From Heteronotia binoei (lineage: Eukaryota), in assembly GCF_032191835.1 (NCBI RefSeq), contig NC_083233.1, forward strand, positions 47,244,001-47,308,000: a stretch of 64,000 nucleotides of DNA, given 5' to 3'. Both the position numbers and the translations under genes were made by a program. Shown here piece by piece: positions 24,701 through 27,700 of this stretch (within the stretch, counting starts at the first letter, position 1; each line of letters starts with the position of its first letter). The notes beneath the pieces are model-generated. The model searched no databases, was not told where the DNA came from, and saw nothing but the letters and a program-made list of their open reading frames with translations.

Positions 24701-27700
24701 GCTTTTAGTGTGACTGGTATAGGCCAAGACACTGCGCCTGCCATAGGTTGCTGACTTCTTTATTTCAGAGCTCTGGAGACACCTAGTTTGAAAGTGTTAT
24801 TATGTTTGCGAGAACTCCACTAAACATGGAGGGAAAATATATCTTGAATAAATTGCAATGTATTTCTTTGGATGTCGGTGCATTTGCAAGACCAAACCAG
24901 CAAAATCTTTGAAGCTTAAAGGGATATTTTAATTTTTGTGGAAGTTTCAGAGCCTTTCTTCCAACAAGTCCTGCGTTTGCAATTGCCCTGATTAACCCTT
25001 TCCCTTCTGCATGTCTCCCATGTTACGGTCAAACTGCCCTCAACCCTATGTGTTAGACGTATCCAAAGATTTTCAATTGCTTTGTTGAACTTTTTACTAA
25101 NNNNNNNNNNNNNNNNNNNNNNNNNNNNNNNNNNNNNNNNNNNNNNNNNNNNNNNNNNNNNNNNNNNNNNNNNNNNNNNNNNNNNNNNNNNNNNNNNNNN
25201 NNNNNNNNNNNNNNNNNNNNNNNNNNNNNNNNNNNNNNNNNNNNNNNNNNNNNNNNNNNNNNNNNNNNNNNNNNNNNNNNNNNNNNNCATGAGAAATATG
25301 GTAACGGGTTTGTAACTGCCACAGCAAAACCATTTGCCTCCATGCCTGAATCTTCTGTCTTGTGGCTTCAGAAACAGCTTTAAGTATTTTATGTACAAGC
25401 AAATAATGTTAGAGAATATTTTATAGTCCTAGCCACAATTCTTTCAAAGAAATAAAGTTAAAGTAAATTAAGATGTAAAAAAAAATAATTGGAGATACTT
25501 TATAGTTAAAGCTTCTAACTCTTCCTGGTTGTTCATTTTTTTCCTTTTTCTTCTTTGTTTGGATTGCAGCGTTCTGCTCTTCTGATGATGCGCTGTGATC
25601 CTGCAGTAGCGCAAAGGCTGCGCAGCGGAATTGCGCATTGCGTGCGATTGAGCCCTTTGTGAATGGCTGACTAGATGATTCATCTCTAACTGGAGGGCTC
25701 CTGAACTGTGTTCTGTAGGCTTTTGGATGGAATTGGGCTGTAAAGTGTTTAGACTTCATACACAAATTTAATACTCAAGTTTCTATATGGGCCTGTGTGG
25801 TAGATTAATCAATCTGGTTGGCTGTTCATGGTCTCCAAGGGCATTCAACAAGGCGCAGCAGCTTGCAGCGAGAGCGCAGCGGCGTGCTGTTAGGGTGCGC
25901 TAGCGACTTCTTGCGCTTGCATTACAGGGACCTGAATCTTTGTGCAAACCTGTCATTTGAGGTTTTAGAGGCTGAAGGTAAGGAGATAGGGCAGGATTCT
26001 TACAAAAAGGGTGAGTTCAGGGTAGAGAATTAACCGAGTTGAAAAACCTCAACCACTAACGTCTGAGATTATCAGTTCTCCTTTTTAATATGTAGTTGTT
26101 AAAGAACTTCAGCTTTCTGTAATGTAACATAAATGGGAGTTATGTTAATAGCAGCTTGCTAGCTAAATTGCTGCCTAAGTGTGTGAGATTCTAGCTTTGC
26201 TTGTTATTGAAGTATGGTATGGATTCAGCAAGAAAGTGGTTGCAGGGTACTTCTGGGGAAAGAAAGTAAGGGCATTGAGTATGTTCTGTGTGATGGACAG
26301 CATAACTGATAATGGTGGATTTGCACTTGGGTTTTGGTTTGCGCTGGCGCAGGATCAACCAGCTGTTTACAGCGCATTAGTTTTGGCGCATGCTAGCCTA
26401 TACTGCAGGATCACTTTTGGCTGGTTAGAGAAGGAATATTAACTGCAGTTTTTCTCTCACTTTTCTTTTGTGCACATATTCCCTTCCCTTGTATCTACCC
26501 ATCTTTAACCCTTCCAAGGCCTGTTATTTGAAGGCAATTGAGACTCAACCAAATTTTGCAGTAGCATGGAGCAATCTTGGCTGTGTGTTCAACGCACAAG
26601 GAGAAATCTGGCTTGCCATTCATCATTTTGAAAAGGTAATTATAGTTTTTTATATCCTGTGGTACATCTGCCAAAAATGCTTCACATCTGTGGCCACTGC
26701 ATCATAAGCACTAATGGATGCCTGTTGGCCAGTTATCTGGGAGAACTGGGTTTGATTCCAGATTTGGTTCCCCACTCCTCCACATATTGGAGGTGACCTT
26801 GGATCAGTCATAACTCTCTCAGAGCAGTTCTTGAAGAGCTCTCTCAGCCCTGCGTACCTCACAGGGTGTCTGTTGTGGGGAGGGGAAGGAAAAGGAGATT
26901 GTAAGCCACTCTGAGACTTCTTCAGGTAGTGAAGGGCAGGGTATAAATCCAATCTTCTTCATATCTACATGTTGGTTAGGTAGATAAATATGTGAATTCT
27001 CAAGGGCTTGTGGTCCTAAATCAAGCAATCTGTAATAAACAGTTAATACATACCTGGAGAACAACAAATGCAAATTATGGATTGGTTCACATGGAAAATT
27101 TCTGCTGATTTCCATCAGTGGCAAATGGCTTCCCTGCTGTGGCCAGAAGGATCTGGGAACAGGGACAATCCCCCCCACACACACAGTGTGAGGGGGAGCT
27201 CAAAGGACTGCTGTGAGTGGGGAGAGCTGTTTGAAGTATATTGTCTTTAGGGACAGATCTTTCCTGTCTTCCTCATCCCTGAACAAGTTTTGTCTAATCT
27301 CTGTTGGGATGAATGTCTTAAATATCTGCCATTTTGCTACTACTGATTTATTTTCTACATTGTTAGACCCAGGTAATGTTTCTTGTATCACAAGCAGGAA
27401 ATAAGAGTGTGTGCAAGTTTGTCATTCAGCTAACTATTAGGGTCATTATGTATGGTAGTAAAGTATAGTAAGATGTGTTTTCTTTAATATACTAAGGCAG
27501 TGACTCTTGACCCAAACTTCTTGGATGCTTACATTAATCTGGGAAATGTTTTGAAGGAAGCGCGTATATTTGACAGGTAAGTGGATAAGATACCTATTTT
27601 CTCAGTACAATAATTGGCTCCCTGTCTGCATTGACTAGGAGTGTTGACACATGGGTCCATCTGGTTGCCTAATTAGTAAATGTATCGGGTGTGATTTTGA

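Follow-up and report, generated by a model that had tools for sequence, protein, structure and literature searches.

How does the decoy exon inside intron 4 of OGT communicate with the real splice sites of that intron, and which sequences make the detention of the intron responsive to O-linked N-acetylglucosamine (O-GlcNAc)? Cells hold their O-GlcNAc constant chiefly through a feedback in which OGT intron 4 is detained, and this detention has been considered as a drug and antisense target. The decoy exon, a silencer and one trans factor (SFSWAP) are already known; the gap in the field lies in the two questions above. The gene is found on the + strand of a 64-kilobase (kb) stretch of the gecko Heteronotia binoei (NCBI RefSeq assembly GCF_032191835.1, contig NC_083233.1, positions 47,244,001 to 47,308,000), here called the window. 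An initial annotation of the window proposed that a single site in the decoy exon can pair with either of two distant partners, giving two competing helices (here A and B) that would act as a switch. The comparison with orthologous introns described below points to helix A as the conserved element. It is a helix of 14 base pairs (bp) that links the decoy exon with the region of the exon 5 branch site, is compensated across bony vertebrates and appears to lie inside a larger covarying structure, which seems to be new. Helix B, on the other hand, is limited to some of the lineages.

Sequences and methods

The comparison set consisted of the window and 19 orthologous OGT intron 4 sequences (20 in total) from birds, squamates, seven non-human mammals, two frogs and three ray-finned fishes. 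The orthologues were reached from the OGT exon at 34564-34818 through a protein search that led to full-length OGT, then to its homologues and the members of their clusters, and finally to whole genes with introns. A scan of metagenomes with an invariant 24-mer of the decoy yielded two bird-like contigs only (L006 and L007), which stand beside a finch assembly (L001). The three squamates (L002-L004) have one OGT protein common to all, and the frogs are Xenopus laevis (L005) and Nanorana parkeri (L018). The mammals (L011-L017) are presumably bats and monkeys. The fishes are represented by two copies (L008 and L009) from one ray-finned fish assembly, GCA_036884735.1, which we take to be that of a sturgeon, and by Pangasianodon gigas (L010) and Mugilogobius chulae (L019).

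Consensus folds were computed with RNAalifold in two separate runs, one of them on 15 whole segments corresponding to the window range 25535-26459. A context of 911 nucleotides (nt) from the window was also folded as a single sequence, both freely and with helix B enforced. For a null that takes the species tree into account, the 15 parsimony-minimum substitutions were re-placed at random on the tree in 200,000 trials.

A conserved helix between the decoy exon and exon 5

The pairing claimed by the initial annotation was checked and is exact: the shared site GTGATCCTGCAGTA at 25595-25608 is the perfect 14-nt reverse complement of TACTGCAGGATCAC at 26401-26414. The site had been placed about 25 nt inside the decoy and the partners 105-180 nt before exon 5, and the measured distances are 24 nt and 105-181 nt, respectively. 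Downstream of the 3' arm of helix A, a branch-point-like motif follows after 23 nt and exon 5 after 105 nt. The loop of the helix includes the decoy 5' splice sites, and the looping-out of these sites that had been proposed thus holds for helix A.

Perfect inverted repeats of at least 14 nt within 1 kb are found five times across the 64 kb, a density of about 0.08 per kb compared to about 0.002 per kb expected for random sequence. With five such repeats in the window, one genome alone is only suggestive for helix A, and it is the comparative data that carry the claim. The other repeats (14-20 nt, no more than 1 kb apart) are located at 4180-4199 with 5165-5184, 32480-32497 with 32503-32520, 54127 with 54372 and 58981 with 59337.

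Across the 20 sequences, standard pairs were found in 279 of the 280 cells of helix A, which is of constant length throughout and closes a loop of 541-964 nt. The most variable position is pair 5 (25599:26410), where all six pair types are present: U-A in the window and the squamates, U.G in birds, C-G in mammals (whose 5' arm reads GUGACCCUGCAGUA), G.U in Xenopus, A-U in Nanorana and G-C in the three fishes. Pairs 6 (C-G, U.G, U-A), 13 (U-A, U.G, C-G) and 14 (A-U, with G-C in the catfish) vary through wobble intermediates or on both sides, and single wobble variants occur at pairs 9 and 11. Altogether, the variable positions show coordinated changes in at least five lineages. The one unpaired cell is a U/U found in one copy of the duplicated fish gene. 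This copy (L008, 7233-7246) carries the only uncompensated change, from A to U at pair 4, and its sister copy L009 is intact; the change may be a relaxation after duplication.

The same helix with the same counts was recovered in both RNAalifold runs. When about 700 registers of the 3' arm were scanned, 0.996 of the cells were paired in the true register and 0.714 in the next best, and control runs of a "parallel", non-helical kind reached 7 positions at most. In the tree-aware resimulation, the observed count of 139 paired cells out of 140 was not attained in any of the 200,000 trials (null 122.9 ± 4.4, maximum 138). The covariation in orthologous introns that the initial annotation had called for is therefore present in helix A, and its compensatory upkeep appears to exceed what relatedness explains. 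A chance origin of the helix was rejected on this comparative evidence.

The variants also indicate the strand on which selection acts. Pairs 5, 6, 9, 11 and 13 are U.G or G.U in various lineages, and on the opposite strand these would become A/C mismatches. So many G.U pairs argue for a constraint on the sense RNA rather than on the DNA or the antisense strand, and constraint at the latter two levels was rejected on this ground. Folding the sequence from the window on its own gives helix A a probability of 0.84-1.0, and the energy of its duplex lies between -21 and -28 kcal/mol in every lineage. Taken together, the comparison strongly suggests that helix A is a real long-range RNA helix under selection from ray-finned fishes to mammals. 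It is apparently both ancient and undescribed.

A larger nested structure around helix A

The RNAalifold consensus fold is nested and contains 88 predicted pairs, of which 21 changed on both sides. Helix A is continued by an extension with two parts; in two fishes, the A-U that opens its AGGCU helix is replaced by G-C, and the GCGC part is invariant. Helix D, a helix of 18 bp, surrounds the candidate decoy 5' splice sites. It has between zero and two mismatches in all tetrapods, with double changes present, and the single-sequence fold forms it with a probability of about 1.0; for the fishes, the alignment of this region cannot be relied on. Helix C contains several pairs with both partners exchanged (such as U-A / G-C / C-G), as is seen in the compensatory versions GUGCAAA/UUUGCAC, GGGCAAA/UUUGCCC and GCACAG/CUGUGC. 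Helix E has no mismatch or one in amniotes and fishes, and three in frogs. A possible further helix, P0, would pair the polypyrimidine tract of the decoy 3' splice site with the purine run AGAGAAGGAAU, which abuts the branch-point-like motif; about 90% of its cells are paired in the alignment, and it is absent from the single-sequence ensemble.

These folds place helix A, as the predicted keystone, in a nested covarying structure together with its AGGCU/GCGC extension and with helices C, D and E. This arrangement would tie the 5' part of the decoy and island C2 to island C3 (two of the three conserved islands of the intron, Table 1) directly upstream of the exon 5 branch-point motif.

Helices E and C, together with an invariant 4-bp helix, line up as a long interrupted duplex (25909-25964 with 26304-26354) that runs from island C2 to the 5' half of C3. 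The region is also rich in GCGC: of 89 copies in the 64 kb, 12 are found in three clusters of four (25589-25646, 25853-25917 and 26340-26390). Both the decoy and C2 contain the sequence GCGCAGCG, which fishes have in C3 as well. These repeats could serve as a protein-binding motif as well as pairing material. An Rfam scan of 25500-26520 revealed no relevant family, the sole match being a chance small nucleolar RNA with 16 bits against a gathering score of 50.

Helix B and the proposed toggle

The second pairing of the initial annotation, between 25596-25615 and 26338-26357, was likewise correctly drawn, with 9 bp, a 2x2 internal loop, another 9 bp and one U.G. Since helices A and B both need 25596-25608, they are mutually exclusive, as had been stated, and enforcing helix B in the window fold abolishes helix A. 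Whether the two form a toggle, that is, a docking/selector-like switch that helps to decide between detention and removal of intron 4 under O-GlcNAc, is a different matter, and the comparative data make this explanation unlikely.

As isolated duplexes, the two helices are similar in the window, with -26.2 kcal/mol for helix A (-31.0 with its extension) and -30.2 for helix B. The latter value is shared by the birds, and the corresponding duplexes amount to -26.7 kcal/mol in snakes, -25.1 in Xenopus and -26.8 in Nanorana. Helix B is thus as stable as A in sauropsids and frogs, and among the partners of the site it ranks first or second in birds, in snakes and in the two frogs. In the frogs, helix B contains a one-base bulge and is kept through changes on both strands: sauropsids have U-A at 25599:26354, where Xenopus has G.U and Nanorana A-U, and at 25609:26344 G-C gives way to A-U in Nanorana. 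The change A25605G in Nanorana closes the internal loop of helix B, which gains one pair, and turns pair 11 of helix A into a weaker G.U. A toggle would further be favoured by the order of transcription, as the 3' arm of helix B is made ahead of that of A.

However, helix B is broken in all seven mammals, where its duplex is reduced to -19 kcal/mol. A T-to-C change in the site is compensated in partner A and uncompensated in partner B (A/G and C/A mismatches), which leaves two mismatches in the first half of helix B, and the second half is down to GCGC. It is in mammals that O-GlcNAc-regulated detention has been documented. In all three fishes, the partner-B segment has a different sequence and helix B is absent (-10 to -16 kcal/mol). 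Within the 911-nt fold of the window, enforced helix B is 8.8 kcal/mol worse than helix A, with a probability of about 5e-7. Helix E, conserved in amniotes and fishes, accounts for the GCAGGA core of the partner-B complementarity. In addition, the two partners lie 44 nt apart in the same island, upstream of the single exon 5 acceptor, and so neither picks a different exon. During transcription, the 3' arm of B appears 44-76 nt earlier than that of A, which makes B at most a transient co-transcriptional competitor.

Helix B therefore appears to be a real alternative pairing in the gecko, birds, snakes and frogs that lies outside the conserved core, and in those lineages it may compete briefly with helix A during transcription. 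The evidence does not support a universal A/B toggle. What stands of the two-partner switch is a possible competition between pairings in the window, in sauropsids and in frogs; its conservation does not. The folds of the window sequence were in favour of helix A and, by the energy difference given above, against helix B.

The locus and its features

The identification of the region as OGT intron 4 with a conserved decoy exon is borne out by the flanking exons and by the conservation from fishes to mammals. The intron, about 2.96 kb long in the window with a masked run of N at 25101-25287, is flanked by exons that encode tetratricopeptide repeats. Exon 4 ends near 23562 with …LEEAK and the next exon opens with [13 protein letters not shown], which fits OGT intron 4. 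Between the three islands conserved from fishes to mammals, the sequence is unalignable. The features are collected in Table 1.

Table 1. Elements of OGT intron 4 and exon 5 in the window, numbered from its first letter.
Feature	Position	Strand	Pairing or remark
Island 1, decoy exon region	~25540-25700	+	conserved fishes to mammals
Helix P0 (possible), 5' arm	25547-25557	+	polypyrimidine tract of decoy 3' splice site; with 26426-26436
Candidate decoy (poison) exon	25571-25739	+	from sequence and conservation
Helix A, 5' arm (shared site)	25595-25608	+	exact reverse complement of 3' arm
Helix A extension, 5' arm	25615-25623	+	AGGCU 25615-25619 with AGCCU 26395-26399; GCGC 25620-25623 with GCGC 26386-26389
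Helix D, 5' arm	25659-25676	+	with 25812-25829
Island C2	~25785-25965	+	conserved fishes to mammals
Helix D, 3' arm	25812-25829	+	with 25659-25676
Helix E, 5' arm (in island C2)	25909-25917	+	with 26346-26354
Helix C, 5' arm (interrupted)	25929-25947	+	with 26321-26339
4-bp helix	25961-25964 with 26304-26307	+	invariant
Island C3	~26295-26450	+	conserved fishes to mammals; contains both partner sequences, ends at branch-point-like motif
Helix C, 3' arm	26321-26339	+	with 25929-25947
Partner-B segment	26338-26357	+	with shared site (helix B) or, via 26346-26354, with island C2 (helix E, most vertebrates)
Helix A extension, 3' arm	26386-26399	+	from consensus fold
Helix A, 3' arm	26401-26414	+	exact reverse complement of 5' arm
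Helix P0 (possible), 3' arm	26426-26436	+	purine run; abuts branch-point-like motif
Branch-point-like motif TATTAAC	26437-26443	+	from sequence reading; putative branch point
OGT exon 5	26519-26637	+	translation [13 protein letters not shown]…HHFEK

The decoy cassette is deeply conserved, as both its 3' splice site and its exon body are retained from fishes to mammals. Its 3' splice site (ttgcag/cg, 25570/25571) and first 70 nt or so are nearly unchanged in the orthologue alignment. The 5' splice sites were read from the sequence; a GT at 25715, which would give an exon of 144 nt, and a GT at 25740 are both candidates for the site chosen in this gecko. The human OGT decoy exon is 143-153 nt long (PMC6097662). 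Two further strong-looking 5' splice-site motifs are found downstream of island C2 and within the loop of helix A (AAG/GTAAGG at 25977-25984 and GG/GTGAGT at 26008-26016). As they start the unalignable spacer, they may be lineage-specific.

The branch-point-like motif is placed 76 nt upstream of the exon 5 acceptor, whose AG is at 26517-26518, and there is no AG from 26450 to 26516. At the position of the TATTAAC of the window, which is of the TAYTAAC form, most non-mammals have TACTAAC or TTCTAAC. The motif resembles the yeast-like consensus, with TACTAAC in birds, snakes and one fish, and TAATGAT at the aligned position in mammals. Contigs from three metatranscriptome RNA runs contain 71-87% of the sampled words of 25290-26700, counted on contig words only, a share that would be compatible with RNA that carries the intron. 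Among the OGT proteins, the 90% clusters also list entries named "germ cell nuclear acidic protein / ACRC", and a bird "OGT isoform A" has 1508 residues (P0340). Both probably stem from gene models in which neighbours are fused, by which unrelated proteins are drawn into the cluster.

A scaffold that may bring the decoy to the exon 5 branch site

The explanation that agrees best with the evidence is that helix A is a selected, real helix in the OGT pre-mRNA and the keystone of a scaffold that links the decoy to the branch-site region of exon 5, which is held to be probable. The selected duplex joins the decoy exon to sequence 23-41 nt upstream of the branch-point motif that precedes exon 5. 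By holding the decoy against this region, the scaffold may set how the decoy engages with the real 3' splice site, and the effect could go in either direction, towards detention or towards release.

Such a scaffold would fit into an existing gap. It was reported that an isolated 526-nt silencer represses splicing without being drug-responsive to O-GlcNAc change, and that an "additional cis-acting sequence" is missing (Park 2017, PMC5588854). The scaffold could be a good candidate for this sequence. In an estimate for a macaque-like locus, the 5' arm of helix A falls at intron position ~2144, inside the silencer (1771-2297), and the 3' arm at ~3120, outside of it. It is also conceivable, albeit tentatively, that the scaffold of helix A with helices C, D and E is itself the missing cis element for O-GlcNAc-responsive detention. 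In that case, an O-GlcNAc-sensitive factor would stabilise or unwind the scaffold, and sauropsids and frogs would add a switch of A plus E versus B. In any event, helix A provides a concrete, mutable element with which to approach the questions of decoy communication and O-GlcNAc responsiveness, and its 3' arm and island C3 are possible new antisense target sites.

Several points weigh against the scaffold. Few independent lineages are represented among the 20 sequences, and helix A has the same sequence in all seven mammals. The single-sequence probability of helices C and E is only about 0.04-0.05 in the window, and P0, being of low-complexity sequence, is kept as a possible helix. A literature search for in-cell duplex data on OGT, from psoralen analysis of RNA interactions and structures (PARIS), sequencing of RNA conformation in situ (RIC-seq) or dimethyl sulfate (DMS) probing, found none. 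Moreover, the decoy or silencer on its own already favours retention when placed in heterologous introns (PMC5588854, PMC6097662), so that helix A is dispensable for repression as such. The placement relative to the silencer assumes that the numbers in PMC5588854 count from the start of the intron.

Alternatively, the scaffold might be a constitutive architecture that compacts the intron of about 3 kb and joins the decoy and the terminal splice sites, for a stalled complex or for later removal, irrespective of O-GlcNAc. The predictions make helix A a very stable helix that is formed almost all the time, its length does not vary among the sequences, and there is no conserved competitor in mammals, all of which would suit this explanation. 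However, the loss of drug-responsiveness when the silencer is isolated without the downstream islands (PMC5588854) hints at a regulatory role. The constitutive explanation is rated as quite improbable, with the remark that the analysis of sequences gives no separation between it and the regulatory scaffold.

It is very improbable that there is no functional helix at all and that the islands are kept for protein-binding motifs (the 12 GCGC) or DNA elements, with the complementarity as a by-product of palindromic, GC-rich motifs: although the 12 copies are strongly clustered within about 800 nt, GCGC is self-complementary and so permits many alternative pairings, and several of the short predicted helices are invariant GCGC that carry no covariation signal, the core of helix A is not based on GCGC, its coordinated changes run through wobbles valid solely in sense RNA, the tree-aware null never attained its pairing, and helices C and D show double changes too.

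Comparison with known systems

Papers on OGT detention (PMC5588854, PMC6097662, PMC7373989, PMC7261177 and PMC12017769) were found to contain no mention of secondary structure, base pairing, stem or hairpin, not every term having been covered in each paper. For the combination of OGT with RNA structure, nothing was found in the open literature, subscription-only papers being outside the reach of the search. This agrees with the initial annotation, which knew of no description of such alternative helices. OGT is also absent from those parts of the text and supplements that were checked of the catalogue of pairs of conserved complementary regions (PCCRs; PMC8052449). The papers on the silencer and decoy of intron 4 deal with the same locus and the same cassette, and the 5' arm of helix A lies inside both the decoy exon and the silencer. 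The island C3 with the partner sequences, in contrast, is not part of the defined 526-nt silencer.

The long-range structures of BRD2 and BRD3 offer one parallel. According to the abstract of PMC10789245, these are conserved complementary regions by which the unproductive splicing of a homeostatically controlled gene is regulated. In BRD2, the complementary regions are in the introns that flank a poison exon and control its inclusion, whereas in OGT a whole intron is detained via a decoy and one of the arms is exonic.

Another parallel is the docking/selector system of exon 6 in Drosophila Dscam1, in which one sequence has several mutually exclusive partners (PMC4691838, PMC8791459). Multiple partners and mutual exclusion are also found at the OGT site. 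However, each Dscam1 selector precedes a different alternative exon, while the OGT partners precede one acceptor. Furthermore, not every pairing is conserved in OGT: only helix A joins the site to a partner conserved across vertebrates, and the other partner has a conserved mate of its own in helix E.

The closest likeness is to splicing-related stems of another kind. In FGFR2, IAS2-ISAR is said to be an intronic stem of two distant complementary boxes, by which splicing elements are looped or approximated. OGT resembles both this stem and the PCCRs (Kalmykova et al. 2021, PMC8052449) in having conserved complementary boxes hundreds of nt apart with compensatory substitutions. The features that mark pairings of the PCCR kind, namely distant boxes in one pre-mRNA, compensatory upkeep and sense-strand constraint, are all present in helix A. 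Unlike those systems, the arms in OGT are found inside a decoy or poison exon and beside the putative branch point of the downstream constitutive exon, and they are part of a predicted nest of several helices.

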